NCBI GenBank assembly: GCA_950097015.1 | Contig: CATNEN010000025.1 | Span: 7,936,001-8,000,000 of the forward strand | Length of the DNA: 64,000 nucleotides | Direction of reading: 5' to 3' | From: Macrostomum hystrix | Taxonomy: Eukaryota; Animalia; Platyhelminthes | In this document: piece after piece, positions 10,971 through 37,211 of the stretch | Layout of the letters: the number at the start of each line of letters is the position of its first letter | Numbering within the stretch: the stretch's first letter is position 1 | Translations under genes and position numbers: made by a program | Notes under the pieces: model-generated | Databases searched by the model: none | What the model was told of the DNA's origin: nothing | What the model saw: the letters and a program-made list of their open reading frames with translations, nothing else

Positions 10971-11569
10971 ACTGTCTTTTCCTTCATCTCGTCCTTCTGG
11001 ACCCTGTGTTTCATTCGCTATTATCTCTCTCGTTCCCAATTGCTTTCTTTTGTGTCTGTCACGTTCCAAAGTGCAGTGAGCAGAAAAACGCCACTTTTTC
11101 CCTTTCCTTTGTGGCCATGCCGTTTAGGGGATTTTAAACGCGCACATAAATTTCCTATTTTCCATCCCCCCATTAATTATTGAGAATTCTTAACTAACAA
11201 ATCCTAGAGCCAATGCGAGTTGGCCGGTGTTTGTGTTTTGGAAAGAGAGAAATTAATGCCAGGTTAATTATTGTCAGTTGCCATGGGCCTGATTATCATT
11301 CTCTCAGAGAAGGGAAATTATTTTGGGGATTTCGGGAGGCAGCTTAAACTGAGTCAGACTGGATATTTAAAAGTCTAGTTAGAGAAGACACTTGGATCTA
11401 CATCGGAATAAATGAATATAATTTAAGCCGATTTTGAAGGAGCCATGATTCTAATACATTTCTTAGAATATCGATAATTCGGGTCTTGTTTTAAGTAAAA
11501 GTACAATTACTTTAAGTTTTTCAAAATACTGGCTTAGAACTTCTCGCTAATTGGTCCCTTTATCTCCCT

Positions 11570-12090
11570 CCCTGTCCCTTTATCTACCTTCCCTGTCCCT
11601 TCATCTACCTTCTCATTCCCTTCATCTACCTTCCCTGTCCCTTCATCTCCCTCCCTGTCCCTTCATCTCCCTTCTTATTCCCTTCATCTACCTTCTCATT
11701 CCCTTCATCTACCTTCTCATTCCCTTCATCTACCTTCTCATTCCCTTCATCTACCTTCTCATTCCCTTCATCTACCTTCTCATTTCCTTCATCCACCTTC
11801 TCATTCCGTTCATCCACCTTCTCATTCCCTTCATCTACCTTCTCATTTCCTTCATCCACCTTCTCATTCCCTTCATCCACCTTCTCATTCCCTTCATCTA
11901 CCTTCTCATTCCCTTCATCTCCCATCCCTGTCCCTTCATCATCTCCCTTCCATGTCCCTTCATCTACCTTCTCATTCCCTTCATCTACCTTCTCATTCCC
12001 TTCATCTACCTTCCCTATCCCTTCATCTCCCTTGCCTATCCCTTCATCTACTTTCTCATTCCCTTCATCCACCTTCTCATTCCCTTCATA
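11570..12090. repeat. 21-nt minisatellite (CCTTCATCTACCTTCTCATTC)
   Basis: Direct periodicity. Confidence 0.92.
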
Positions 12091-12292: not shown

Positions 12293-15200
12293 TCAGGGTG
12301 GTCCGTCGGTCGGTTCCGCCGCGCGATCTTCCTCGCCATAGGCTGGGAAGAAATCAGCTCGGCCGGTATCCCGGAGGAAGTGGGCGAGCTGAGGGATGTT
12401 CTCGGGCGAGCAGGCTTCGGCAAGAGTCGGTGCCGGCCCGAGGTGTTTTAGCCTAGCCCGGGTGAAGGCCGGGCAGTGGCAAATGAAATGCTCGGCGTTT
12501 TCACGGCCGGAGCAGCAGAAAGGACACGTTTCCTCAGGCACGTGGCCTTGGAGGTAGCGGTGTCTGGTGAAGCAGCCATGTCCCGAAAGGGCCATGGTGA
12601 CTGCTCTCAGGTCTCTGCGGTTTAGCCTGAGTAAGGCCTTACGCAGGTTACTAGAGGGGGTTGGCACCGCAGCCCTGGACTGGCGACAGTTCAGGGTGCT
12701 GGACCACCTCCTCCGGTGCTGGGTCTCCATCCAGTGGTTGATGCTGGAGTTGACAACGGAGGCGGGGATCGGGGATTCCGGGCCCGGGCCCATCAGGGAG
12801 CTGGCTGCTCCAGCCTTTGCAAGCTCGTCCGCCATCTCATTCCCTGTGAGCCCGGCGTGCCCAGGGATCCACATCAGCTCCACCTTGTTAGACTGCGCCA
12901 AACCGTTTAACTGGGTGTTGCAGTCCAAGGTGGTTCTGGAGCGAGAGGTGCAGCGACTGAGGGCCTTGAGGGCTGCTTGACTGTCGGAGTGAAAAAAGAT
13001 CCTCCGACCAGCCAGCTGCCTCTGGCGCAGCTCAGCCGCACAGAAACTGATGGCGAGCATTTCGTTTTGGAAAACGCTTGAGCTCTTGCCACAGTGTTGG
13101 GAGTGGGTCCAGAGGACCTCGCCACCCGAGGCGACGCACACCCCGAATCCCGATTTACCGTTCATCAGGGAGCCGTCAGTGTAACAGTGGACTGCGGGGT
13201 CATCCCAGCAGTCCTTTACCTCATTACGAGGGAAGATGCTGACTTTGTACCTGTGGCTCCGGAGTAAAGTGGCCGGGGCCCCGTCCGAAAGGATGGTGAG
13301 CCCTCCGCACTCGCCCAGAGTTTTCAGGCAGAGGTCAGAGTGGGGCAGAAGGGAGCGCTTCGAGAAGGCTCGCGAATTCTGGAAGGATACACCCGCATCA
13401 AGGAGACGACGGGTGGACTTTGCCACTTCCCCCTTAACAAAAATGTCAATGGGTGTAGCGTTGAGGAAAGCGTTCATGCCTTCAAAGGGAGTGGAGGGTG
13501 GGGCGCCCAGCGTCATGCGACAGGCTCTGCCCTGCACCCTATAAAGCGCCTCCAGGTTTTTCTGGATGCTCATGGCACTGGCCCAGATGAGGCCAGCGTA
13601 AGCGACTGACGGTCTAATGATCGCCGTGTAAATCCACCAAAGGTTTTTGGGGGTTAGCCCCCAAGTGGTGCCCACGGCTCGCCTGACTTGCGCCAGAATG
13701 GCCAGGGCCCTCTTGGCCTTTGTGGTAATGTGCGGGGTCCAGTTAAGCCTATGGTCTAGCAGGATACCAAGGCACCGGACCTGCTTTTCCATGGCAATAT
13801 TCTTGCCATAGAGAGTCAGAGGCTCAATGGTCCAGCGCAGCCTGCTGGTAAACATAACCGCAACGGTCTTGGACTCAGAGAGTCGGAGCCCGCATTGGTC
13901 CGCCCAGCGCACCGCCCTGTTGATAAAGCCCTGAATGAGGTCCCTGGTGGTTTCCGCCGAGGGGCCCGCGCAGATGGCGGTCACATCGTCGGCATATCCC
14001 ACCTTCAGGACTGGGTCAGGCCGAGTGCTTTTTAGCAGCTCATCCATGACGAGATTCCACAGCAGTGGGGTGAGGACGCCACCTTGGGGCCCTCCTTTTA
14101 GGACAGGTGCCGAGAGCACCCTGCCTTCGAGGTGGGCCACCACGTGGCGATTCCGGATCATGTACATGACCCAACGGACGAGGTGGGGGTGAGTGGCCCT
14201 GGAAACCAGGGCCTTCTCAAAGGCTTCGAAAATAACGTTATCGAAGGCCCCCTCAATATCAAGGAAAACAGCCAGGGCAAAACCGCTGCCCAGCACTGCC
14301 TTCTCGAGAGTCTCCACAATGCAGTGGAGGGCGCTCTCCGTGGACCGGCCCGCCCGAAAGGCGTGCTGGTTTGGTGAGAGCGGGGCCCGCCCTAGCTCTA
14401 CAGTAAGAAGGCGCCAGAGCACCAGTCTTTCCATGAGCTTGAGGCAGGTGGAAGTCAAGCTTATCGGGCGATAAGACTTGACCGAGCGATAGTCGCCTTT
14501 GGCGGGCTTCGGGATGAAGACGACCCGGGCTTCATGCCACCGCGCTGGTACGTAGCCCAGCACGATGCAGGCCCGTAGAAGTCTGCAGAGGAGATGGAGG
14601 AAGCGGCCATTTTTAACCGCTTCATGCAGAAAGGCCGGATATATACCATCTGGCCCAGGTGCTTTAAAAGGATTGAATGACTTAGCCGCGCGAACGATGC
14701 GGTCATTCGTAACGAGTGACTGAGCCAGGCCCTGACCTCCACGCGAGTGGTCGTCTGGGCCGAAGTGCGCCGGTACACTCGGGAAGAAATGCCCTAGCAT
14801 AAGCTCGAGCGTTTCCTCCGGGCGCTCAGTGATCGAGCCGTCCGGCTTTTTAATCGATGAGAGCTTGGAGAAGCGGTCGTTGGTGAGCGCCTTTACCACG
14901 CGGGCCGTGGGCCGCGAGCCCTCAAGCCCTTCGCAGTATTGTCGCCACTTGTTCGCTTTTGCCCTTCTGACCCGGCCCTTAAACTCATGGATGGCGCGAG
15001 TATAGGCCTCTTTGTCATCAGGGTCGTGCGAGGTTTTCAGCTTCCTCTGGAGAGCCTTAGCTCGGCGTCTTAGGATTCCGAGCTCGGGGTTCCACCAGGG
15101 GGCCGATTTTTTGCCTTTGTAGGCTTTGAGCGGGCAAGCCATTTCGTAGGCCTCTGTGATGGCGCCGCCCAGCAGGGCAGCCACTCCATCCAGGTCCTGC

Positions 15201-15997
15201 GTGGTTTCCATGGCCATGGAGGGGTCAGAATCCCGAAGGCCCTCATGCAGCTTTTGGCTGAACGCGGGCCAGTCGGTATTTCTGACATTACGCCTCCAAA
15301 TAGGCTTTTGCTTCTTATCGGGGGTGCCGATGTTGAAACGGATGAAACGGTGGTCCGAGAGCGAGCTTTCGGTCTCCCACACCTCCCACCCCAGCACCCT
15401 TGGGAGGATGCCGGGTGAGGCCAGGGTGACGTCAAGCACCTCAGCCCACCGCCCATTGTCGAAAGTGGGCGTGTTGCCCACATTGCAGAAGTTTAGAGGC
15501 GTGCCGCTGACGAAGGCCAGGAGCTCTTCGCCGCGGTCATTGATTTTTGAGCTACCCCAGTGGGTGTGATGCGAGTTTACATCTCCCGCGAGGAGCAGCT
15601 CGAAGTTTCGTGCCCTGGCGAATTCACAGAGGGCGACGAGGGTATCGCTAACCACGGGGGCGTCGCCTGCCAGGTAGGCGGATGCCACGAGGGTCAACTT
15701 GTTAGGCACAATGTGTGCAGATTGGATGACGCAGATGTCCCCGTTAGAGAGATCGGGTCTCATCCACGCATTTAAGGCTTTTGCGGCATAGATCAGTGAT
15801 CTAGGGCGGACAGAGTCTGCCATGCAGAAGCAGTCATAGCCAGCAGGAATGTTGCTTGGCTTGTTCTTTGATAGCCAGGGCTCCTGCACAAGTACAAGGC
15901 CCGGCATCATGCGCTCTGTCGTGCGCATCAGATTGACTGATGCTGCCACGCAGTGCTGGGTGTTAACTTGCAGACATGATATTCCGGGGATCATCAT
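12293..15997 (-). CDS. LINE ORF2 (1234 aa): AP endonuclease, reverse transcriptase, RNase H, C-terminal CCHC knuckle
   Basis: APE motifs [21 protein letters not shown]; RT motifs [38 protein letters not shown]; RNase [35 protein letters not shown]; [14 protein letters not shown]. Confidence 0.97.
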
Positions 15998-16009
15998 GCA
16001 GGCAGAGGT

Positions 16010-17557
16010 CTACTTGGAGGGGGACCCAGCCAGAAGGCGGTCCTCCTCCTCCGGGTCGATGTCGGTAGCCATGGGCTCCTCCGTGCCCAGGCCCCGAGCC
16101 GGAGACGGGAACTCGACGGCGTCAGCCGCCCAGTCCCCGCCCCCGGCCCCGAGCCCAGGCCCAGAGTCGCCCTCAACTGGAGCCGACACCGCTCCCTGGG
16201 CCGTGGGAGGGGCGCTCGAAGGGCCCTGCTCGATGGAGCTGGGCACCTCTGAGGCCTCCCCCGTAGCCCTTGGTTGCGGCGCCTGCCCCGGTGGGCCACC
16301 GCGCATCTCAGCGCGCAGCTGGGCCATCTTGGCGGTTCGCACCACCTCGGAGGCCCGCTGGAGAAGGCCCCGGCGCTTTGTGACACGCGCGGGGCGACGC
16401 TCAGAGCCGCCAGCGATGGCACGCTCTGGCCTTTTTTGGCGGGACGACTGGGCCCTGCCCCCAGTCCCAGCCTTGGGGTCCGAGGACCCTTCATTGGCCG
16501 GTACGGTGGTGGGCCCGGTCTGACCTCGGGTTTTATCCGCCTCGAAGGCGAAGATTTTGGTCTTCCACAGACCAATGCAAATGTTGGCGCCATCTGGGTA
16601 GCGGCGTGTCCATTGCTCGGACAGGCCCAGAATGGCGGTGAAACCGGTGCCGTCGGGGCGCAGGATCGTGCGGTGCACGATCAGGCCCGCTGTCGGCAGC
16701 TCCCGGTTCATCGCGATGAGGCCCCTGCGGAGGTCCTCAGCGCTGGTGACGACACTTTTCGCCGGGACGAAGATACGGTGTCGCTTGGTCTTTGGTGGCT
16801 CGTTCTCCCGTAGGAACTCGAGGCCAGCCGCCCAGCTCTGCGTGGGCAGCAACTCGAGGAGCCGCCGCCCCGATTCCGCATCGCCGGGCCAGACGACGAA
16901 GCACGATTCCCTGGTAGCGCTTGCGCCGACCGCCAGGGGCTCGCCCTTCAGTTGAAGTTGCCACAACATAGCATCTATGTTGCGGCAAATGTCGCTGAGC
17001 TGTTCGCTGCTCAGCCTTTTCCCGTCTCTGCCGGTGATGATGACGGCAGGTTGCCTACGTGCGATGGCGGCGTAGGTAGCTTGTGGTCCCGGGCCCTGTC
17101 CGGTGGCGTCCCCACCCTCGGGATCTGCGTCGGCGGTGGGCACAGGGCCCTCCGCCTCCGCTTCTCCTTCGGGCCGGGCAGCCGTCCGGATGGGCGCCGG
17201 GCCCTCCTTGGCCCGCGACCCTGGCCTCGGGGCGTCGTGGGCTCCGCCCCGTGCAGGAGCCTGGGCAGGAGGCACAAGGCCCCCCGCCCCAGCCCCCGCC
17301 CTAGGCAGAGCCCCTTCGGCCCCTCTGGCCTGGGCCTGGTCCTTGGTCAATGGAGCCGACGTGCCGTGGGCCAGCATGCGCCTACGGCGTTTTGCCGCTC
17401 CAGAGGTGGTGGAGCGCTTAGCGCCCCGGTCATCGCGCGAGTTGGGCAGCGCGGCATTTGTGGCGGTCGCGGGGCCAGCTAGCCCGGGCGCCGCAGCGTG
17501 TATGGCCTCAGGCACCATGGTGTCCTCGGCCGGAGCAGTTGAAGGGCTAGAAGCCAT
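16010..17557 (-). CDS. LINE ORF1 (about 515 aa from ATG 17557); central domain resembles the DUF4780-type ORF1 domain of LOA-like elements
   Basis: Long ORF ending 12 nt before the ORF2 ATG; low-complexity ends around a globular core (HRIFVP..DLRRGLIAMNRELPTAGL); domain name assigned from memory, not searched. Confidence 0.85.
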   Translation of the reverse strand: MASSPSTAPAEDTMVPEAIHAAAPGLAGPATATNAALPNSRDDRGAKRSTTSGAAKRRRRMLAHGTSAPLTKDQAQARGAEGALPRAGAGAGGLVPPAQAPARGGAHDAPRPGSRAKEGPAPIRTAARPEGEAEAEGPVPTADADPEGGDATGQGPGPQATYAAIARRQPAVIITGRDGKRLSSEQLSDICRNIDAMLWQLQLKGEPLAVGASATRESCFVVWPGDAESGRRLLELLPTQSWAAGLEFLRENEPPKTKRHRIFVPAKSVVTSAEDLRRGLIAMNRELPTAGLIVHRTILRPDGTGFTAILGLSEQWTRRYPDGANICIGLWKTKIFAFEADKTRGQTGPTTVPANEGSSDPKAGTGGRAQSSRQKRPERAIAGGSERRPARVTKRRGLLQRASEVVRTAKMAQLRAEMRGGPPGQAPQPRATGEASEVPSSIEQGPSSAPPTAQGAVSAPVEGDSGPGLGAGGGDWAADAVEFPSPARGLGTEEPMATDIDPEEEDRLLAGSPSK

Positions 17558-18624
17558 TGAAAGCTGCAATGAAGAGAGGGGCTTCCTGTAGACACAGGCA
17601 GGAATAACCCGCTCAGCCGCGATCCCAAAACTGAGCGGGGGCAGCCAAAAAAGACAAGTTACAACCCGGGGTGGGATGCCAGGACCACCGGGAGGAACCG
17701 TAAGAGACCAGACTACTCCCTGGCCAAGCGTCCATCAGCACGGTCAACACTGGGACATTGGAGGGTGCCATTGAGCCGGCGCCGAGGCCTGCGGGCTGGC
17801 CGCAAACCCTGTTAAGGTCAAAGGGTGACACCTGTCCCTCAGGGCCGTAGCCAGAGGTACCTGATCACGCACAGGTGCACGAAAATTGCGGACAAGCCAC
17901 ATACCCTGTTAAGGTCAAAGGGTGACACCTTTCCCTCCAGCCGGGGCTAGAGGTACCCAGTTTGGCCGGAGGCCCTGGATGGGTCATCCAGCGCTGTTGC
18001 CCATTCTGTCCGGCTGCCCTAGGGTCAGCCTTGAACACTCGCGGGACGTGTACCCATGGGTCAGCTGACGGGACAGCGTTGGAGGGATTCCTGCACCCGA
18101 AGGTACAGGTCTCCTTCCTGCCAGGCCTGCTCAAAAAACGGCTGCAGGTGTGAGGCATCGCAGACCAAAGCCCGTGGGCCTGGACTGACTCATACCTCAC
18201 AGGCACTGTGTCCCGCCGGTGCGAGCGCATTGTATTGGGTGTGTTGAATAGAATCCCACCTTTATGAACTTTTCCCCTTGAATGAAATGATGGTTATGCA
18301 ATGCTCTCGAAAAAAAAACAAGAGAGATTGAGAACGACTGAACAATAATGCAGTTGGGAAATGCACCTGCAAGTTTAAATAGAGTTACACCAAGCTACAA
18401 TGCACAACTATTCCCACATTTTCTCTTGTAACTGTCCATCAGGTGATAAAAAGAATGAGGCATTGCAGAGAAAATGGAAAGCCATGGCTTGCAAAATAAC
18501 TATAGCAACAATGCAATTAAAATAGCGAAGCATAGAGCTATACGCTTGTACAGCTTGAGTGGTCTGAGCTGCTTAGCAGCAGCAGCAGCGCAATAGCAAT
18601 AGCAAAAGCAACAACAACAACAAT

Positions 18625-19287: not shown

Positions 19288-19660
<373 letters not shown>

Positions 19661-20524: not shown

Positions 20525-21066
20525 AGATAATAAATAGAGGCAGAGTGAGAGTGAAAGTGAGAGGGAGAGGGAGAGGGAGAGGGAGAGGGAGAGGGAGAGG
20601 GAGATGGAGAGGGAGAGGGAGAGGGAGAGGGAGAGGGAGAGGGAGAGGCAGAGGGAGAGGGAGAGGGAGAGGGAGAGGGAGAGGGAGAGAGCGGGAGAGA
20701 GGAGAGAGGACACTGCCCATTGAATTTCAAAAATCTAATGTTGGAATCGATTCCGATATGTATCGAAAAAATTGAAAGCCAGATTCGAACCAACCCAACT
20801 CCAGACGCGTTTCGCTCTTGTTGGAGCTCATCAGTAGAGCCTTGAGGAAGAGAGAGAGGGAGAGGGAGAGGGAGATGGAGAGGGAGAGGGAGAGGGAGAG
20901 GGAGAGGGAGAGGTAAAGAGGAAGAGAGCGAGGGAGAGAGGGAGAGGGAGAGGGAGAGAGGGAGAGGGAGAGGGAGAGGGAGAGGGAGAGGGAGAGAGGG
21001 AGAGGGAGAGGGAGAGGGAGAGGGAGAGGGAGAGAGGGAGAGGGAGAGGGAGAGGGAGAGGGAGAC
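20525..21066. repeat. Two (GGGAGA)n tracts (about 20525-20710 and 20846-21066) separated by a ~135-bp unique segment
   Basis: Direct reading. Confidence 0.93.
20797..20841 (-). ncRNA. Minimal type-I hammerhead ribozyme
   Basis: Minus strand reads GGCTCTA-CTGATGA-GCTC(CAACAA)GAGC-GAA-ACGCGT-C-TGGAGTT: full catalytic core, 4-bp stem II, palindromic stem III, GUC cleavage triplet, 7-bp stem I. Confidence 0.88.
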
Positions 21067-21309: not shown

Positions 21310-21780
21310 CTCTCATCTACCTGTCTCCCACTCTCATCTGCCTGTCTCCCACTCTCATCTACCTGTCTCCCACTCTCATCTACCTGTCTCCCACTCTCAT
21401 CTACCTGTCTCCAACTCTCATCTACCTGCCTCTCCCACTCTCATCTACCTGTCTCCCACTCTCATCTACCTGCCTCTCCCACTCTCATCTACCTGTCTCC
21501 CACTCTCATCAACCTGTCTCTCCCTCTCATCTACCTGTCTCTCAATCTCATCTACCTGTCTCTCACTCTCATCTACCTGTCTCCCACTCTCATCAACCTG
21601 TCTCTCCCTCTCATCAAAATGTCTCTCCCTCTCATCTACCTGTCTCTCCCTCTCATCTACCTGTCTCTCCCTCTCATCTACCTGTCTCTCAACCTCATCT
21701 ACCTGTCTCTTAATCTCATCTACCCTTCTCTCAATCTCATCTACCCGTCTCCCACTCTTATCTACCTGTCTCCCACTCTA
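21310..21780. repeat. 21-nt minisatellite (CTCATCTACCTGTCTCCCACT)
   Basis: Direct periodicity. Confidence 0.92.
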
Positions 21781-22516
21781 ACCGTTTCTCCCTCTCCCTC
21801 TATATGTTTCCCTCTCACTCTAGCTGTGTCTAGAACTCTATTTTCGTACCTCTAGGTTCAAGTTGTAAATTATCGTGTAAGGTGCAAAGCATAAAATTTT
21901 CTCTAGCTTACACAGCTTCAGTCGCAAGTAATTATTGGCCTCATTCCCCCACATCCTCACGACTAGCGCCCCGACCAAGATTGACAGGTGTCCAACCTCT
22001 GAGGATTAAACTCACGAAAGTTCTCAAACCGCAGTGGGGGGAAATAAGTGAAACAAAGGGGCCTTACTAGACGATTGCGGTGAGGTGAGGCTGGCAGTGA
22101 AGATGGGGGTGGCGAGTGGAGCCTGTTTTGACAAGTTCTTGCGCGCAAAGTGAAGTGCCATGACGGGATAACTCCAATGAACCTGACTACTCCTCACTCG
22201 AGATTTTAGGTGGTGGGGGGCTTGAGGCCGGAGTCGGATGGGAAGGCGGAGGCCTCGTTGAATAATTCAGATGCCAGACAATCAGACAGGTCGAGGCAGC
22301 GTCAATCACGAGCAATCAAGGTCTCGGCACTAGCCTAGCCCGTGTCGTGTTGTTAAGGCATGTCCTGCTAGCCAGACTCTTCAACGTGTAGCACCTACTG
22401 CGTGTGTTTTTTGAGTCATTCTGTATCTATCAGAATTAAGAAATTAGAAAGATATAAAAACACACAAATATGCGTTATCTCTAAATCAAATGTGCTCTAG
22501 AATATACTATATGGTG

Positions 22517-22915
22517 AATGGGAGAGTGGGAGAGTGGGAGAATGGGAGAATGGGAGAATGGGAGAGTGGGAGAATGGGAGAGAGGGGAATATGAGAGAGG
22601 GAGAATGGGAGAGGGAGAATGGGAGAGAGGGAGAATGGGAGAGAGGGAGAATGGAAGAGAGGGAGAATGGGAGAGAGGGAGAATGGGAGAGAGGGAGAAT
22701 GGGAGAGAGGGAGAATGGGAGAGAGGGAGAATGGGAGAGAGTGAGAATTGGAGAGTTGGAGAATGGGTGATTGGGAGGGTGTGAGAATGGGGGAGTGGGA
22801 GAATGGGATAATGGGAGAATGGGATAATGGGAGAATGGGATAAAGGGAAAATGGGATAAAGGGAGAATGGGAGAATGGGAGAATGGAATAATGGGAGAAT
22901 GGGAGAATGGGAGAG
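22517..22915. repeat. (GGGAGAAT)n / (GGGAGAATGGGAGAGA)n repeat
   Basis: Direct reading. Confidence 0.92.
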
Positions 22916-23553: not shown

Positions 23554-26295
23554 ATGCTCTACGTAACCATAGCAACCCTGGCGGCGTTAATCGTCTTGTC
23601 CACCGGCCAGTCCTCGGAGCTGCTGCAGCTGATCCTGCAGGACAATGTCGACTTCAACGCCAAAGTTGGCGACCTGACCGAACTGGATCCCAACCTACCG
23701 GCTCCGAATCCCGGCGTAGGATTTCAGACTGCGACGCTAATCGCCGATAATCCGCGCCTGGAGGGCTATTTCGCGGTGGATCAGCGTGGCGCCATCTATG
23801 CTAGGCGCAATGTGGACAGAGATGAGTTGTGCTCAGCCGCCGGTTGCTGCGAGTCCGTCAGCTGCCAGTTGGACTTCGCCGTCACCTTGGTTACGATCGG
23901 TCACGAGGCTCGCCGCAGACTTCGCATCGTCCTGATGGACGAGAACGACAAGCGGCCGATATTCCCCAGCATGGCTCCGTTGGAGCTGTCCGAGGACGCG
24001 GCGGCACCGGGACCCACTGGGCTGCGGCTCACGCTGGCTGAGGATGGCGACGGTCCGGGACACCGAGTAAGCAACTACAGCCTGATGGATCCAAGTGGCA
24101 CCTTCGGTCTGGACGTCGTGGAAGAACGACTGTCGAATAATTCGACTTTTCCTGTGCCGCACCTGAGGCTGCTGAAGCAGCTGGACCGCGAGCTGCTGCC
24201 ACAGTACCAGGTGACCCTGGTGGCCACGGACGGTTTGCACACAGCCTCCGCCGTTGTCACCATTCGCGTTGGCGACGTCAATGACAATGCGCCAGTGTTC
24301 GACCGCGAACTGACCGAGTCCAGCTTCCCCGAGACGAAAGCCGTCGGCGAGAAAATTCGCGCCCTGACAGCCACCGATGGCGACTCCGGAGCGAACGCCA
24401 ACGTGACATTCGCCATCGCTTCCGTGAAGCCTCCCAGCCTAGCCAGCTACTTCCGTGTCGGCAGCGAGTCCGGTCTCTGGGGCCTGTTCCTGGCGCGCGA
24501 GCTCGACTTTGAGTCGCCTGAGCAGCGCTTCGCCGAGATCCTGGTGGTGGCCCGGGATCAGGGCAGCCCGCCGAGGTCGTCCACAGGCACAGTTCGAATC
24601 AGTGTCACCGACGCCAACGACAATGCGCCGGTGATCACTGAGCTGTACAGCTACAACCTGGAGGAGCACAAGCCAGCCAAGGTGCTGGTGAAGACGCTCC
24701 AGGTGACCGATGCCGACCAGATTTCGGTTGGTCGCGTGGACTGCCGCATCGAGTCCAGCAGCATGTTTCGCTTGGAGCTGAACGGCAGCGGGGCGAAGCC
24801 GGGCTCACAGAACGAGCGCCTCACCTACAGCCTGTTCAGCGCCACGTCGTTCGACTACGAGATGACCCAGGAGGAGCAGGTGATGGTTGGCTGCATCGAC
24901 AACGCCTCGCCGGAGAGGGTGACTCGGCAGCTCTACCGGGTGCCGATTCGCGAGACCAACGACTTTGGCCCGGTATTCCAGCAGCGCAACTACCACGTCA
25001 GCGTGCCGGAGGACCTGGCCAACGGCCTCACTGTCCAGACGGTTCGCGCCGACGATCAGGACAAAGACCGCTTCGGTGAGGTGCACTACGAGTTGGACGC
25101 AGCCGGTGCCGCCAATTTCAGCATCGACCAGCGCTCTGGCAGGATCGAAGTTCGCGGCCGACTCGACCGAGAGACAGCCGACAGCCTCCGCTTCACCGTC
25201 GTCGCCAGAGACTACGGGGGCAGGTCGGACACGGCCACGGTGGTCGTTGTGCTCACCGATGTGAACGACTGCGCTCCGCAGTACACGGGACGCACCGCCT
25301 TCCAGGTGGTTGAAAACTCGCCACCGGGGACTGTGTTGGGCACCGTGACCTTCAGCGATCCGGACAGCGGGCAGAACGGCAGCGTCAGCTTCGCCATGCT
25401 CAGCGATACTCACAACGTAGCCAACGAGTTCCTTCACTTGTTCAGCAACGGCTCCCTGGTGGTGGCCAAGCCCATCGACCGAGAGGGCTACGCCAAGTTC
25501 TACGTTGAAATTGAAGCTCGCGACGGAGGCCGCATCAGCCGCAGCTCCACCGCCACCATTCAAGTTGACGTCGCCGATGTCAACGACTGTTCACCGACGC
25601 TGGACCAGCCGCCGCCGGGCAGTCTGGTGGGTGCCGAACGCACCGTCGTCTACACGAACCTGCCGCCTGGCTCACCGATTCTGGCTGTGCGCGCCCTAGA
25701 TCGCGACCTTGGCAACAATGGCACAGTCGAGTACAGACTCGGCGCAAGCAATGCCAGCGGCCTCCTCAGCATCGGCCTGGCGACTGGCCGTCTTGCGACA
25801 GCCTGGGATCCCGACACGGCGCCGCCCGCGCCCGGCGTCTACACCGTGATTGTGCTGATGCGCGACCGCGGAGAGCCGCGACCGCTCGAAGGACGCGGCG
25901 AGTTTCGTCTGCGACTCACTTCTCCACCGGGCGGCGGCCCGCTAGGCCGACTGGGCAGCGCCGGCGTCAACGGCCTGGTTGCTCTGGTGGCCATTGTGGC
26001 TGGAACCATTGTGCTTGCCTCCGGCCTGCTGGTCGCCATCTGCCGTGTCAGGGCCGGCACCAGGGGCGGCGGCAGAGGTGGCGGTGGTGGTGTCTCAAGA
26101 AGACGACAATTGACCACCGGAATTCTGGTTGGAGCTGACGATGAAGAAGCCGGTTTGAAGGCGGCAGCCGCGGCTTCAGCGGCAGCTGCGGCATCGTCTG
26201 CTGGCCAGGAGTCGTCGGCTTCGTCGACTTACTACGCCTGGCAGCATCCGGGATCGCCGCTGGGCTCGCTGCTCAGAGACGATGCCGAGAAGCAG
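23554..26295 (+). CDS. Protocadherin (delta1-like, 7 cadherin repeats), large first coding exon: signal peptide, EC1-7, TM, proximal cytoplasmic region
   Basis: Linkers DENDKRP, DVNDNAP, DANDNAP, ETNDFGP, DVNDCAP, DVNDCSP; LDRE/LDFE/IDRE motifs; Cys-rich EC1 (DRDELC..CC..C); TM LVALVAIVAGTIVLASGLLVAIC; phase-0 donor CAG|GTGAGA at 26295/26296. Confidence 0.95.
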
Positions 26296-26332
26296 GTGAG
26301 AAGCCTTTGATCAGACTACTGGCTGCACTGAG

Positions 26333-29092: not shown

Positions 29093-29802
29093 TTATGAAT
29101 TAGCGTTAGTATTAAACGCTGTCTAGATCAGAAACTAATATCTGTTATCACTCATAATACTCTAGTGTATAAATACTTTTGCCCATAGAGATTGTATAGA
29201 ATAGATATTGATCTACAAAGTCTAATGAACAATGCAGAAAACATTAACTTTACAGAAAAATAATTTGACTAGAGACAGAGCTTGATCTAGTACAGGTAAG
29301 CACAGGTTTCTACCATAGACATATTTCAATACTGTATTTACAGTATGTCACATAGCACAAGACTATCAAATTCTACCTTATGATGATGAATTGAAATTCG
29401 CCTAAATTAAGGGAGGTGGGGATTAAAGCAGGTGTCAAAATTACCGATCAATTAGCGCGCGCAGCTCAATCGGATGAGAAGAAAAGAGTAACTTTTTTAT
29501 TCCAATGGCCAAAGTGTCAAGTTATTTTGCTGGTTCAACTGAACTGCCAATTTTATTCAATTCATTTTCTCACCTCACTTCAACCCGTCCGTCCGTCCGT
29601 TCCATAGGTATTTGGGATAATGATGACAAGGCCCATTAAAAAATGCTGAATGGCTTTTGACCCGACTTGAGTTTAGAAGTTCTTTTTCAATTCACAATTC
29701 TAGTCGATTTGGGTGAAATAGAAATTAGCCCGTTCAATTATAAACTTATAAACAGTATATTGACTTAACTTAGATTATCATTCAAGGCCTTTGAAACATT
29801 TT

Positions 29803-32800
29803 TTGAGACACAAGAGAGATGAGACACGGGAGAGATGAGACACGGGAGAGATGAGACACGGCAGAGATAAGACACGGGAGAGATGAGACACGGGAGAGAT
29901 GAGACATTGGAGAGATGAGACACGGCAGAGATGAGACACGGCAGAGATGAGACACGGCAGAGATGAGACACGGGAGTGATGAGACACGGGAGTGATGAGA
30001 CACGGGAGTGATGAGACACGGGAGTGATGAGACACGGGAGAGATGAGACACGGGAGAGATGAGACACGGGGGAGATGAGACACGGGAGAGAAGAGACACG
30101 GGAGAGATGAGACACGGGAGTGATGAGACACGGGAGTGATGAGACAGGGGAGAGATGAGACACGGCAGAGATAAGACACGGGAGAGATGAGACACGGGAG
30201 AGATGAGACTCTGGAGAGATGAGACACGGGAGAGATGAGACATTGGAGAGATGAGACACGGCAGAGATGAGACACGGCAGAGATGAGACACAGGAGAGAT
30301 GAGACACGGGAGAGATGAGACACGGGAGAGATGAGACACGGGAGTGATGAGACACGGGAGAGATGAGACACGGGAGAGATGAGACTCTGGAGAGATGAGA
30401 CACAGGAGAGATGAGACACGGGAGTGATGAGACACGGGAGAGATGAGACACGGGAGAGATGAGACATTGGAGAGATGAGACACGGGAGAGATGAGACACG
30501 GGAGAGATGATACACGGCAGAGATGAGACACGGCAGAGATGAGACACGGGAGAGATGAGACACGGGAGAGATGAGACACGGGAGAGATGAGACACGGGAG
30601 AGATGAGACAAGGGAGAGATGAAACACGGGAGAGATGAGACACGGGAGAGATGAGACACGGGAGAGATGAGACACGGGAGAGATGAGACACGGGAGAGAT
30701 GAGACACGGGAGAGATGAGACATGGGGGGAGATGAGACACGGGAGAGATGAGACACGGCAGAGATGAGACACGGGAGAGATGAGACACGGCAGAGATAAG
30801 ACACGGGAGAGATGAGACACGGGAGAGATGAGACTCTGGAGAGATGAGACACGGGAGAGATGAGACATTGGAGAGATGAGACACGGCAGAGATGAGACAC
30901 GGCAGAGATGAGACACGGCAGAGATGAGACACGGGAGTGATGAGACACGGGAGTGATGAGACACGGGAGTGATGAGACACGGGAGTGATGAGACACGGGA
31001 GTGATGAGACACGGGAGAGATGAGACACGGGAGAGATGAGACACGGGAGAGATGAGACTCTGGAGAGATGAGACACGGGAGAGATGAGACACGGGAGAGA
31101 TGAGACTCTGGAGAGATGAGACACGGGAGAGATGAGACATTGGAGAGATGAGACACGGCAGAGATGAGACACGGCAGAGATGAGACACGGCAGAGATGAG
31201 ACACGGGAGTGATGAGACACGGGAGTGATGAGACACGGGAGTGATGAGACACGGGAGTGATGAGACACGGGAGTGATGAGACACGGGAGAGATGAGACAC
31301 GGGAGAGATGAGACACGGGAGAGATGAGACTCTGGAGAGATGAGACACGGGAGAGATGAGACATTGGAGAGATGAGACACGGCAGAGATGAGACACGGGA
31401 GTGATGAGACAGGGGAGAGATGAGACACGGCAGAGATAAGACACGGGAGAGATGAGACACGGGAGAGATGAGACTCTGGAGAGATGAGACACGGGAGAGA
31501 TGAGACATTGGAGAGATGAGACACGGCAGAGATGAGACACGGCAGAGATGAGACACAGGAGAGATGAGACACGGGAGAGATGAGACACGGGAGAGATGAG
31601 ACACGGGAGTGATGAGACACGGGAGAGATGAGACACGGGAGAGATGAGACTCTGGAGAGATGAGACACAGGAGAGATGAGACACGGGAGTGATGAGACAC
31701 GGGAGAGATGAGACACGGGAGAGATGAGACATTGGAGAGATGAGACACGGGAGAGATGAGACACGGGAGAGATGATACACGGGAGAGATGAGACACGGCA
31801 GAGATGAGACACGGGAGAGATGAGACACGGGAGAGATGAGACACGGGAGAGATGAGACACGGGAGAGATGAGACAAGGGAGAGATGAAACACGGGAGAGA
31901 TGAGACACGGGAGAGATGAGACACGGGAGAGATGAGACTCTGGAGAGATGAGACACAGGAGAGATGAGACACGGGAGAGATGAGACACGGCAGAGATAAG
32001 ACACGGGAGAGATGAGACACGGGAGAGATGAGACTCTGGAGAGATGAGACACGGGAGAGATGAGACATTGGAGAGATGAGACACGGCAGAGATGAGACAC
32101 GGCAGAGATGAGACACAGGAGAGATGAGACACGGGAGAGATGAGACACGGGAGAGATGAGACACGGGAGTGATGAGACACGGGAGAGATGAGACACGGGA
32201 GAGATGAGACTCTGGAGAGATGAGACACAGGAGAGATGAGACACGGGAGTGATGAGACACGGGAGAGATGAGACACGGGAGAGATGAGACATTGGAGAGA
32301 TGAGACACGGGAGAGATGAGACACGGGAGAGATGATACACGGGAGAGATGAGACACGGCAGAGATGAGACACGGGAGAGATGAGACACGGGAGAGATGAG
32401 ACACGGGAGAGATGAGACACGGGAGAGATGAGACAAGGGAGAGATGAAACACGGGAGAGATGAGACACGGGAGAGATGAGACACGGGAGAGATGAGACAC
32501 GGGAGAGATGAGACACGGGAGAGATGAGACACGGGAGAGATGAGACATGGGGGGAGATGAGACACGGGAGAGATGAGACACGGCAGAGATGAGACACGGG
32601 AGAGATGAGACACGGCAGAGATAAGACACGGGAGAGATGAGACACGGGAGAGATGAGACTCTGGAGAGATGAGACACGGGAGAGATGAGACATTGGAGAG
32701 ATGAGACACGGCAGAGATGAGACACGGCAGAGATGAGACACGGCAGAGATGAGACACGGGAGTGATGAGACACGGGAGTGATGAGACACGGGAGTGATGA

Positions 32801-35800
32801 GACACGGGAGTGATGAGACACGGGAGTGATGAGACACGGGAGAGATGAGACACGGGAGAGATGAGACACGGGAGAGATGAGACTCTGGAGAGATGAGACA
32901 CGGGAGAGATGAGACACGGGAGAGATGAGACTCTGGAGAGATGAGACACGGGAGAGATGAGACATTGGAGAGATGAGACACGGCAGAGATGAGACACGGC
33001 AGAGATGAGACACGGCAGAGATGAGACACGGGAGTGATGAGACACGGGAGTGATGAGACACGGGAGTGATGAGACACGGGAGTGATGAGACACGGGAGTG
33101 ATGAGACACGGGAGAGATGAGACACGGGAGAGATGAGACACGGGAGAGATGAGACTCTGGAGAGATGAGACACGGGAGAGATGAGACATTGGAGAGATGA
33201 GACACGGCAGAGATGAGACACGGCAGAGATGAGACACGGCAGAGATGAGACACGGGAGTGATGAGACACGGGAGTGATGAGACACGGGAGTGATGAGACA
33301 CGGGAGTGATGAGACACGGGAGAGATGAGACACGGGAGAGATGAGACACGGCAGAGATGAGACACAGGAGAGATGAGACACGGGAGAGATGAGACACGGG
33401 AGAGATGAGACACGGGAGTGATGAGACAGGGGAGAGATGAGACACGGCAGAGATAAGACACGGGAGAGATGAGACACGGGAGAGATGAGACTCTGGAGAG
33501 ATGAGACACGGGAGAGATGAGACATTGGAGAGATGAGACACGGCAGAGATGAGACACGGCAGAGATGAGACACAGGAGAGATGAGACACGGGAGAGATGA
33601 GACACGGGAGAGATGAGACACGGGAGTGATGAGACACGGGAGAGATGAGACACGGGAGAGATGAGACTCTGGAGAGATGAGACACAGGAGAGATGAGACA
33701 CGGGAGTGATGAGACACGGGAGAGATGAGACACGGGAGAGATGAGACATTGGAGAGATGAGACACGGGAGAGATGAGACACGGGAGAGATGATACACGGG
33801 AGAGATGAGACACGGCAGAGATGAGACACGGGAGAGATGAGACACGGGAGAGATGAGACACGGGAGAGATGAGACACGGGAGAGATGAGACAAGGGAGAG
33901 ATGAAACACGGGAGAGATGAGACACGGGAGAGATGAGACACGGGAGAGATGAGACACGGGAGAGATGAGACACGGGAGAGATGAGACACGGGAGAGATGA
34001 GACATGGGGGGAGATGAGACACGGGAGAGATGAGACACGGCAGAGATGAGACACGGGAGAGATGAGACACGGCAGAGATAAGACACGGGAGAGATGAGAC
34101 ACGGGAGAGATGAGACTCTGGAGAGATGAGACACGGGAGAGATGAGACATTGGAGAGATGAGACACGGCAGAGATGAGACACGGCAGAGATGAGACACGG
34201 CAGAGATGAGACACGGGAGTGATGAGACACGGGAGTGATGAGACACGGGAGTGATGAGACACGGGAGTGATGAGACACGGGAGTGATGAGACACGGGAGA
34301 GATGAGACACGGGAGAGATGAGACACGGGAGAGATGAGACTCTGGAGAGATGAGACACGGGAGAGATGAGACACGGGAGAGATGAGACTCTGGAGAGATG
34401 AGACACGGGAGAGATGAGACATTGGAGAGATGAGACACGGCAGAGATGAGACACGGCAGAGATGAGACACGGCAGAGATGAGACACGGGAGTGATGAGAC
34501 ACGGGAGTGATGAGACACGGGAGTGATGAGACACGGGAGTGATGAGACACGGGAGTGATGAGACACGGGAGAGATGAGACACGGGAGAGATGAGACACGG
34601 GAGAGATGAGACTCTGGAGAGATGAGACACGGGAGAGATGAGACATTGGAGAGATGAGACACGGCAGAGATGAGACACGGCAGAGATGAGACACGGCAGA
34701 GATGAGACACGGGAGTGATGAGACACGGGAGTGATGAGACACGGGAGTGATGAGACACGGGAGTGATGAGACACGGGAGAGATGAGACACGGGAGAGATG
34801 AGACACGGGGGAGATGAGACACGGGAGAGAAGAGACACGGGAGAGATGAGACACGGGAGTGATGAGACACGGGAGTGATGAGACAGGGGAGAGATGAGAC
34901 AGGGGAGAGATGAGACACGGGAGAGATGAGACACGGGGGAGATGAGACACGGGAGAGATGAGACAAGGGAGAGTTGAAACACGGGAGAGATGAGACACGG
35001 GAGAGATGAGACACGGGAGAGATGATACACGGGAGAGATGAGACACGGCAGAGATGAGACACGGCAGAGATGAGACACGGGAGAGATGAGACACGGGAGA
35101 GATGAGACACGGGAGAGATGAGACAAGGGAGAGATGAAACACGGGAGAGATGAGACACGGGAGAGATGAGACACGGGAGAGATGAGACTCTGGAGAGATG
35201 AGACACGGGAGAGATGAGACACGGGAGAGATGAGACTCTGGAGAGATGAGACACGGGAGAGATGAGACATTGGAGAGATGAGACACGGCAGAGATGAGAC
35301 ACGGCAGAGATGAGACACGGCAGAGATGAGACACGGGAGTGATGAGACACGGGAGTGATGAGACACGGGAGTGATGAGACACGGGAGTGATGAGACACGG
35401 GAGTGATGAGACACGGGAGAGATGAGACACGGGAGAGATGAGACACGGGAGAGATGAGACTCTGGAGAGATGAGACACGGGAGAGATGAGACATTGGAGA
35501 GATGAGACACGGCAGAGATGAGACACGGCAGAGATGAGACACGGCAGAGATGAGACACGGGAGTGATGAGACACGGGAGTGATGAGACACGGGAGTGATG
35601 AGACACGGGAGTGATGAGACACGGGAGAGATGAGACACGGGAGAGATGAGACACGGGGGAGATGAGACACGGGAGAGAAGAGACACGGGAGAGATGAGAC
35701 ACGGGAGTGATGAGACACGGGAGTGATGAGACAGGGGAGAGATGAGACAGGGGAGAGATGAGACACGGGAGAGATGAGACACGGGGGAGATGAGACACGG

Positions 35801-36171
35801 GAGAGATGAGACAAGGGAGAGTTGAAACACGGGAGAGATGAGACACGGGAGAGATGAGACACGGGAGAGATGATACACGGGAGAGATGAGACACGGCAGA
35901 GATGAGACACGGGAGAGATGAGACACGGGAGAGATGAGACACGGGAGAGATGAGACACGGGAGAGATGAGACAAGGGAGAGATGAAACACGGGAGAGATG
36001 AGACACGGGAGAGATGAGACACGGGAGAGATGAGACACGGGAGAGATGAGACACGGGAGAGATGAGACACGGGAGAGATGAGACACGGGAGAGATGAGAC
36101 ACGGGAGAGATGAGACACGGGAGAGATGAGACACGGGAGAGATGAGACACGGCAGAGATGAGACACGGAGA
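29803..36171. repeat. 16-nt satellite (GAGATGAGACACGGGA), about 400 copies, with higher-order structure
   Basis: Direct periodicity; rare variants recur at spacings that are multiples of the unit. Confidence 0.98.
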
Positions 36172-37211
36172 TGACTTTGATAGTGTTAAACTGATAAGGT
36201 ATGATATAAAACGAATCAAATTTGAACCACAGCTCGAATTTCTAGTTAATTAGCCTAATTGCTTCTATTTTTCGCGCCTTCGTTGAAAATTTCGAACGGA
36301 AAACTCAGGCCTTTGAAGCAGCGGCGGCGCAACTCTGCTTGAATTAAGAAGCAAAAATAACAAGACAATTAATATGAGAAGTGGACACGCTTGGAGACCA
36401 CTTCTCACTTCCATGAGAGTTTCCTACGGTATCCAATCAGCTAACAACTGGCCCTGTTCGACTATTGAGAACTTTGGCGAGAGTTGCATCCCCAAGGGTC
36501 TCTTAGTCTTTTTCTCACCAGCCTCAACTCATTCTTAATTATCGGTAGGGGGGCCCTCAGCACTAGAATTTGCTTGGTTGTGAAGGAGCGAGTGAGTGAG
36601 GGAGCTAAGGGTGGGCAGGTCGATCCTATAGCTTGTAGAGTTGTAGACTAACTATATAAGGCATAGCTGAATGATGACACTTCACACTTCACGCATTTCT
36701 CACTCTCTACAGAGGCTACAGTCAAAGTCAATGATTTTATTTCGTTCCTCTAATGAGGCAAAGAGAGAGAGAGCGCCAGTGTCTTCTACTTCCCAATATC
36801 CCAGACTCCCAGAAAATTTCTATGAAATTCGAGTCAGATTGAGATCAAACTCTGCAGAAGACTCCACAAGAAAAATTGATCGACAAAGTCTGACATGAGA
36901 TTGAAATTCGCATTGTGTTAAGTTAGCAGTGCGTGATTACACGCTCATAGTTTGATAGTTCAAAATCTCTGGGACAGAACAGTTTTTGAAACTTTAGCCC
37001 GCGAACTCACAGCATCGCCTTGGGGTCTTTTTTGAATAAAAATGAGGGCTTTCAAGAGATCAAGATCAAAATTGAATCCTCATTAGTGGCTGATTCACGA
37101 AAAAATGTTAAGAAATATGAACCCCTATTTGGGATGACGAAAAATTCATAACTCCTAGTGAGTGAGGACTTCTTCGTAGGACTGATTGAAGCTCGTGAAT
37201 TTCACCTAAAA

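Follow-up and report, generated by a model that had tools for sequence, protein, structure and literature searches.

A hammerhead ribozyme sequence of Macrostomum hystrix is carried by a dispersed family of short, probably retrotransposed repeats

Introduction

A short motif on the minus strand of Macrostomum hystrix DNA, at positions 20797-20841 of the stretch analysed here (64,000 nt, hereafter the window), has the appearance of a hammerhead ribozyme. The locus raises the questions of whether the motif is a genuine ribozyme sequence, what kind of element carries it and how that element spreads. In a preliminary description, the motif was regarded as an intact minimal type-I hammerhead hidden between two (GGGAGA)n tracts, and an undescribed family of dispersed, non-autonomous ribozyme elements was suggested. 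How animal retrozymes and Penelope-type hammerhead elements copy themselves, and what the ribozyme does for them, are open questions in the field. The motif and its relatives were therefore followed in the genome from which the window was taken (220 Mb, 42 contigs).

The hammerhead motif

The minus-strand letters at 20797-20841 were re-read and match the earlier reading exactly. All of the hammerhead core nucleotides are present, stems I and II are base-paired, and the predicted cleavage position, 3' of C20804 (between 20804 and 20803), is upheld by the sequence. The motif is composed of the following parts.

20841-20835, minus strand: 5' strand of stem I, GGCTCTA
20834-20828, minus strand: CTGATGA
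20827-20824 and 20817-20814, minus strand: stem II, GCTC/GAGC
20823-20818, minus strand: loop of stem II, CAACAA
20813-20811, minus strand: GAA
20810, minus strand: A15.1
20809-20806, minus strand: CGCG loop of helix III
20805, minus strand: U16.1
20804, minus strand: C17
20803-20797, minus strand: 3' strand of stem I, TGGAGTT

Stem I of this copy has seven pairs, three of which are G-U wobbles, and stem II has four. The features of a type-I hammerhead are found: helix I is open, GUC stands at the cleavage site, and the core aligns with that of the Rfam model Hammerhead_HH9. A further CTC/GGG extension of stem I had been proposed, which pairs on paper but is probably fortuitous, because its 5' half is flanking microsatellite past the point of truncation and its 3' half is private to this copy (GGG, where the family has GCC).

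A search of the whole window at Rfam gathering thresholds gave no match, the HH9 score of 30.1 bits being below the gathering score of 52. The search with Rfam hammerhead models that had been recommended was run with relaxed thresholds on 301 nt. The best match was Hammerhead_HH9, aligned with the core (30.1 bits, E = 8e-6). The same model gave 38.7 bits on a full-length family copy, and Hammerhead_1 scored 31.4 against its gathering score of 34. Minimal Penelope-type variants of the hammerhead are expected to score below the Rfam gathering values. Thermodynamic folding of one isolated motif or of two motifs did not favour the hammerhead fold, and the isolated 61-nt stretch folds no better than its shuffles (z = -0.3). 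Such a lack of folding advantage is usual for minimal hammerheads and counts neither way. Judged by its letters, the motif is a genuine hammerhead ribozyme sequence.

Helix III, which had been noted as palindromic and of the dimer type, is indeed a single A-U pair with a palindromic CGCG loop, and a stable helix III thus requires a second copy. A one-pair helix III with a palindromic tetraloop has been described in the hammerheads of Penelope elements and amphibian retrozymes, whose cleavage is weak in the monomer and improves in the dimer. Two ACGCGU segments can, by base complementarity, pair as a 6-bp helix, which makes the suggested pairing in trans through the ACGCGT palindrome plausible. 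The ribozyme would act as a dimer through this palindrome and, like its counterparts in retrozymes and Penelope pseudo-LTRs, would release unit RNAs from multimeric transcripts.

The repeat family

The motif belongs to a repeat family. Searched with one loop base left free, the genome contains 67 instances of a 31-nt ribozyme core (reversed control, 0), and a 21-nt motif of the 3' end occurs 126 times with up to two mismatches (control, 0). The family consists of about 100-130 copies. BLAST with a 147-nt stretch, the copy-number check proposed earlier, returned 41 matches with 93-100% identity from 132 candidates. Every exact core with checkable surroundings sits in a copy of the same short element. 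With at least 126 3' ends, at least 67 identical cores and no open reading frame, the dispersed and non-autonomous family that had been surmised from a single copy is borne out; the absence of other copies with conserved cores, named at that time as part of the result that would speak against it, is not what the genome holds.

Thirty loci were read in one orientation, and the 137 bp recognized in the window proved to be only the 3' part of a longer unit. This unit contains a 291-bp core (AGGCCAGCACC to GGGCAGTGTCC) and a 45-nt CT-rich tail, which amount to 336 bp. The GC contents of the unit and the core are 0.494 and 0.478, respectively. No open reading frame was found in the 336-bp unit, which is non-coding. 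Its features on the sense strand, all read from the sequence, are listed below.

unit 131-141, sense: A-box-like motif, TAGCCTAATGG
unit 157-164, sense: 5' strand of stem I
unit 165-171, sense: CTGATGA
after unit 195, sense: cleavage site
unit 208-218, sense: perfect B-box, GGTTCGAATCC
unit 228-233, sense: T6

The sampled copies are 88.6-100% identical to the consensus (median about 98.6%), with most of them at 97-100%, and the family is dispersed and young. The catalytic nucleotides are nearly invariant (one change in 616 site-copies), and loop II varies by 7.4%. This conservation of the ribozyme is not readable as selection, since the family is young and the sampling was biased to intact cores.

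In computational folding, the unit RNA cut at the ribozyme site forms a long imperfect rod (-120.3 kcal/mol, z = -4.36), and none of 100 shuffles folds as well. The rod forms because part of the 5' arm repeats the 3' arm in inverted orientation; an inverted T-arm-like segment belongs to this part.

A tandem cluster (L031, G000:C38:21521500-21531499) was considered as a candidate autonomous element and rejected, as it is a segmental tandem duplication holding a truncated copy. A 2.28-kb unit is repeated there at least 2.5 times, with alternating spacings of 1589 and 680-690 bp and five identical truncated copies of the element. The duplication postdates the insertion of the element.

The copy in the window

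The copy in the window is a truncated member of this family. Its parts and surroundings, with the evidence for each, are as follows.

20663..20842, minus strand: 5'-truncated retrocopy of the 336-bp element, unit 157-336 (local alignment to a unit trimer, length 180)
20797..20841, minus strand: type-I hammerhead ribozyme motif with predicted cleavage 3' of C20804 (sequence, Rfam HH9, genomic copies)
20781..20791, minus strand: tRNA-type B-box-like motif, GGTTCGAATCT, for which the family consensus is GGTTCGAATCC (sequence; unit 208-218)
20766..20771, minus strand: T6 run, Pol III terminator-like (sequence; unit 228-233)
20708..20765, minus strand: 3' arm, identical to the family consensus (consensus comparison)
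20663..20707, minus strand: the element's own CT-rich 3' tail of about 45 nt with a CCCGCTC signature, merging into the target array (tandem copies; sequence)
20844..21065, no strand assigned: upstream half of the target microsatellite, (CTCTCC)n on the element sense strand (TRF)
20536..20706, no strand assigned: downstream half of the target microsatellite, the call overlapping the element tail (TRF)

By BLAST, window positions 20842-20708 align with core positions 157-291 at 94.8% identity. There are seven differences from the consensus, all of which are located at unit 159-221 and none at 222-291. One loop variant is common to six copies. The GCC-to-GGG change and three changes at unit 218-221 are private to this copy, and its B-box carries the private change C218T. 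A subfamily with the GGG and CTGGC changes was sought in the genome and discarded, as no other member was found; the changes are hence private.

No second copy of the element was found in the 64,000-nt window, and the copy is solitary. The earlier observation that the window contains neither a Penelope reverse transcriptase nor a second monomer agrees with the domain and copy searches. The word intact holds for the ribozyme core, which is complete, but not for its host element, which is a 5'-truncated stub of 180 nt. The (GGGAGA)n tracts are likewise real (TRF 20536-20706 and 20844-21065), but they are the insertion target of the family and not a hiding place. Because the A-box and the entire 5' arm are missing (the copy starts at unit 157), the window copy is most likely inert unless it is read through from outside. 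By itself, it is ordinary transposon debris.

Structure of the insertions

The junctions of 48 independent loci were analysed. These loci were found via the ribozyme, and starts beyond unit 165 are therefore under-sampled. Nearly all of the 48 loci have their 3' end at the tail, and the 5' ends are variable. The inserts span 0.5-1.6 units, with 14 of 48 shorter than one unit and 34 of 48 at least one unit long, and their lengths cluster at 172-213, 370-402 and 489-530 nt. Long arrays were not seen in the 48 loci, and a spacing of 300-336 bp between matches was found at a few sites.

No copy starting at core position 1 against foreign DNA was seen. In each of the 27 copies whose 5' arm is complete, the element is preceded by ~20 nt or more from the end of a previous tail, often including CCCGCTC, and seven of these copies also carry the end of the previous core. 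The preceding stretch matches the tail at 36 of 45 positions, compared with 19 of 45 for a control stretch. Among the starts within unit 1-165, 15 of 20 fall at 125-165 (binomial P = 3.5e-6), a common class to which the start of the window copy (157) belongs.

Clean target duplications were identified at two sites outside simple arrays, and measure about 80 bp (L016) and about 91 bp (L038). The insert at L016 begins exactly at unit 196, directly 3' of the cleavage site, a hint that the ribozyme cleaves in vivo; about 8% of samples yield one such start by chance. Most retrocopies run through the 195/196 site, and the templates must thus have been uncleaved or religated there. L062 was examined as a second copy starting at the cleavage site and set aside, its start being blurred by TGGAG reiterations and a 43-nt insert. 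At L013, a 41-nt AT-rich filler (GT/AT-rich, neither element nor target) lies at the 5' junction, between the target minisatellite and an element copy that starts at the T6 run (unit 228).

Penelope-like elements are characterized by frequent 5' truncation, partial tandems (pseudo-LTRs), a 30-40-bp 'tail' and target duplications of variable length (PMC8557442). The 5' truncation, the partial tandem (pseudo-LTR) and the terminal tail extension of a Penelope-mobilised element are all present in the Macrostomum family. Copying from multimeric or circular RNA has been proposed for retrozymes. The features of the insertions fit Penelope-like elements, and fit the copying of multimeric or circular RNA equally well.

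Target sites

The copies are located almost exclusively in CT-rich micro- and minisatellites, in a single orientation throughout the sampled loci. On the sense strand, C+T makes up at least 85% of the 60 nt following the tail at 33 of the 48 loci, and less than 70% at only four. GA-rich downstream flanks were found in none of the 48 loci; of background windows, 1.5-4.5% are CT-rich and 3-6.6% are GA-rich. The repeat motif of the target varies between loci and is identical on both sides of each insert, which shows that the arrays pre-existed and were split and did not grow from the tail. At L016, a short CT run adjoins the tail, with the second nick 80 bp away.

A bias for microsatellites, namely (TA)n, (CA)n and (C)n, has been reported for Penelope-like elements (PMC8557442; bioRxiv 10.64898/2026.07.22.740005), and in the telomere-attaching Athena and Coprina elements the hammerhead lies beside an annealing repeat tract (PMC8557442).

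Promoter-like motifs and alternative explanations

The A-box-like and B-box motifs of the unit are 66 nt apart and the ribozyme is nested between them. A part of the unit probably descends from a tRNA, to judge from its sequence, since a perfect 11-nt B-box is very unlikely to occur by chance in 336 bp. No tRNA was detected in full-length copies or in constructs with the ribozyme excised, either by ARAGORN or by Rfam at E values up to 10. A T6 run follows 10 nt after the B-box within every copy. As this run lies upstream of the copied 3' arm and tail, a normally terminated Pol III transcript cannot be the template. Because of the hotspot of 5' ends from unit 125, a Pol III start with read-through retains a minor probability.

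SINEs with tails other than A are known; the A-box-like TAGCCTAATGG and the perfect B-box GGTTCGAATCC, the clustering of 5' ends from unit 125 on, near the would-be tRNA +1, and a genome rich in young intact LINEs, one of which lies 4.7 kb off on the same strand, would likewise suit a tRNA-derived SINE. Such an element would be transcribed by Pol III from its A and B boxes and mobilised by a LINE via the 3' arm or the microsatellite-like tail, with the hammerhead as a passenger or as a trimmer of read-through transcripts. This origin is nevertheless unlikely: the T6 inside every copy should stop Pol III before the 3' arm and tail, no tRNA is seen by ARAGORN or Rfam with the ribozyme excised or kept, and LINE-mobilised SINEs do not habitually give inserts of more than one unit preceded by a tail, or target duplications of 80-90 bp. 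Among LINE 3' ends, the single one that was read adjoins a GA-rich minisatellite and not CT-rich sense-strand repeats. The occurrence of A-box, hammerhead, B-box and T6 within about 110 nt could also be taken as a gene in its own right for a small Pol III RNA, tRNA-like, ribozyme-containing and ended by T6, to which the remaining repeat is incidental. That is highly improbable, given that the window copy, starting at unit 157, is wholly devoid of the A-box, that the co-amplified conserved unit reaches 123 nt upstream and about 100 nt downstream of the cassette, that neither ARAGORN nor Rfam detects a tRNA fold and that the copies act as retro-insertions.

The sub-gathering Rfam scores, and the fact that the best-matching model is HH9, could point to a hammerhead-like string arisen by chance in low-complexity DNA or to a domesticated host ribozyme like amniote HH9. 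Sixty-seven identical cores against none in the control, all checked ones within one repeat family, and a locus that is a truncated insertion within a microsatellite and no conserved single-copy site leave this explanation scarcely credible.

The family is probably a non-autonomous retroelement of the retrozyme or Sm-alpha-like kind, for which a Penelope-type enzyme is the probable mover.

Proposed mode of integration

In the simplest mechanism that can be proposed for this retrozyme-like element, the CT-rich RNA tail would anneal to the GA-rich strand at a nick in a satellite. The nicked DNA 3' end would then serve as primer for a reverse transcriptase acting in trans, which most likely is of the Penelope type. 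Synthesis would follow multimeric or religated circular RNA, and would often stop just past the ribozyme (unit 125-165, window copy included) or a full turn later in the next tail.

The fuller form of this proposal is a microsatellite-homing retrozyme, which is possible but offered tentatively. In this form, base-pairing of the CT tail with the GA strand of a polypurine/polypyrimidine satellite would start reverse transcription, and the template would be either a multimer or a religated circle; the ribozyme would divide the tRNA-type promoter, and only copies made across a religated or uncleaved site would regain the A-B promoter. If true, this would be the internal counterpart of the telomere annealing of Athena and Coprina, and the 125-165 hotspot would represent either a Pol III start with read-through of T6 or a structural stop for the enzyme. 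This small, young family in a compact genome is tractable for testing annealing-primed integration and circular or multimeric templates owing to its unusually readable junctions: the CT tail is constant, the orientation strict, inserts can exceed one unit and the duplications measure 80-90 bp.

The partner enzyme

An autonomous Penelope-like element would encode a Penelope reverse transcriptase with GIY-YIG in an open reading frame, and the unit is non-coding. No reverse transcriptase sharing the ribozyme or the tail was found among the checked exact cores and Pfam candidates. The only reverse transcriptase in the window is that of a LINE (APE, RT, RNase H), on the same strand and 4.7 kb off. 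A genome-wide search with Pfam GIY-YIG gave only two short, cellular-looking open reading frames. For Pfam RVT_1, the best 150 of 1998 candidates have scores of 123-152 bits and long open frames; to judge from score and length, they would be LINE- or LTR-like. A degenerate GIY-YIG motif pattern had no match in the genome, which is uninformative. A GDSL esterase was tried as a lead to the partner and dropped, since only cellular-looking genes were found and the match is a lipase beside a kinesin. Generic patterns for other hammerhead families gave essentially none with the CTGATGAG core.

Neighbouring and associated sequences

The LINE and the repeat beside it occupy 12293-17569 (minus strand) and 11560-12090 of the window. 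The LINE looks intact and contains a 1234-aa open reading frame with APE endonuclease, reverse transcriptase and RNase H, and an upstream 519-aa open reading frame without a Pfam match. Its 3' end adjoins a 21-bp minisatellite that is GA-rich on the LINE sense strand.

The surroundings of the window copy are unusually rich in simple repeats. These include (AGC)124 within a 383-aa open reading frame (19288-19660), a 21-bp minisatellite of 22 copies (21310-21779) and an 8-bp repeat of 50 copies (22516-22914). About 6.4 kb of purine-skewed low-complexity DNA (29765-36219; GC skew 0.53, AT skew 0.6) contains several open frames; the region is a satellite array and holds no gene. A long open exon with at least four cadherin repeats (Pfam Cadherin, 246 bits) is present at 23554-26310 on the plus strand.

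A hairpin mini-element of about 43 nt (CAAGGACCACTAGTAGAT ... ATCTACTTGAGTAGTCCGTG) was identified at no fewer than five loci, several times inside minisatellites. It is located at 1450-1492 of L062, near 1501-1545 of L065, L066, L067 and L068, and, as a second copy in L068, at 1632-1670. The hairpin of L062 is flanked by a possible 8-bp duplication. The mini-element could be a tiny MITE or a transposon footprint. At L009, a different, reverse-oriented tRNA-like sequence, with T-arm and D-arm recognizable by eye, lies about 70 nt upstream of the element copy and may be another SINE or a tRNA gene.

Comparison with described systems

The kind of element is known, and it is in layout and target that the Macrostomum family differs. 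The term undescribed can be kept at most for this species-specific family, as non-LTR retrozymes, Sm-alpha SINE-like elements and Penelope pseudo-LTR hammerheads have already been described.

Metazoan non-LTR retrozymes are non-coding repeats of about 170-400 bp with a type-I hammerhead and a GC content below 50%; platyhelminths are among the listed hosts, and Penelope elements have been proposed as their mobilisers (Cervera & de la Pena 2020, PMC7229834). The Macrostomum family resembles them in being a non-coding 336-bp repeat with a type-I hammerhead and a GC content of 0.494, in its highly self-paired unit RNA and in target duplications of more than 4 bp. Metazoan retrozymes occur in arrays, from dimers to large multimers, whereas the Macrostomum copies are dispersed and contain 0.5-1.6 units. 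The Macrostomum family further differs in being limited to CT-rich satellites in one orientation and in having its ribozyme between tRNA-type boxes.

The unit length of Sm-alpha is about 330 bp. In the schistosome elements Sm-alpha and Sj-alpha, as summarised in two sources, the ribozyme follows a Pol III promoter, and the tRNA part is still recognizable, tRNAscan assigning it to tRNA-Gln in Sm-alpha (PMC6765202; PMC2770079). These elements are described there as occurring singly or in short tandems, and cleavage splits the promoter from the body, so that single copies lose autonomy (PMC6765202; PMC2770079). The Macrostomum family is like them in being hammerhead-bearing and non-autonomous with tRNA-type Pol III promoter motifs. 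Compared by description, the promoter of Sm-alpha is upstream of the ribozyme, whereas in the Macrostomum family the two boxes enclose the ribozyme and a tRNA cannot be detected; the copy number given for Sm-alpha is 10^4 compared with about 10^2 for the Macrostomum family.

With Penelope-like elements (Craig et al. 2021, PMC8557442; Li et al. 2026, bioRxiv 10.64898/2026.07.22.740005), the family shares a minimal type-I hammerhead with a short palindromic helix III. It also shares 5' truncation, partial tandems, a terminal tail, variable and sometimes long target duplications and a microsatellite bias. Unlike autonomous Penelope-like elements, the Macrostomum unit is devoid of an RT/GIY-YIG open reading frame, and its targets are CT-rich arrays entered in strict strand orientation instead of (TA)n, (CA)n and (C)n. 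The telomere-attaching Athena and Coprina elements similarly have a hammerhead beside a terminal tract able to anneal to a primer DNA end; that tract consists of reverse-complement telomere repeats, whereas the Macrostomum tract is CT-rich and its insertions are internal.

The satellite-2 of newt and axolotl and the amniote HH9 ribozyme (RF02275) also have a one-pair helix III with a palindromic tetraloop. The stem II of the Macrostomum motif, GCUC-CAAxAA-GAGC, is nearly identical to the HH9 consensus, and its unit, like that of amphibian satellite-2, is of about 330 bp. The motif differs from HH9 in scoring below its gathering value and in a stem I without the HH9 internal-loop sequence, and from both systems in host lineage and genomic organisation.

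Taken by analogy, the Macrostomum family would work like retrozymes, Sm-alpha/Sj-alpha and Penelope derivatives, and differs from them in its nested ribozyme, its dispersed copies of 0.5-1.6 units and its oriented insertion into CT satellites with long duplications.
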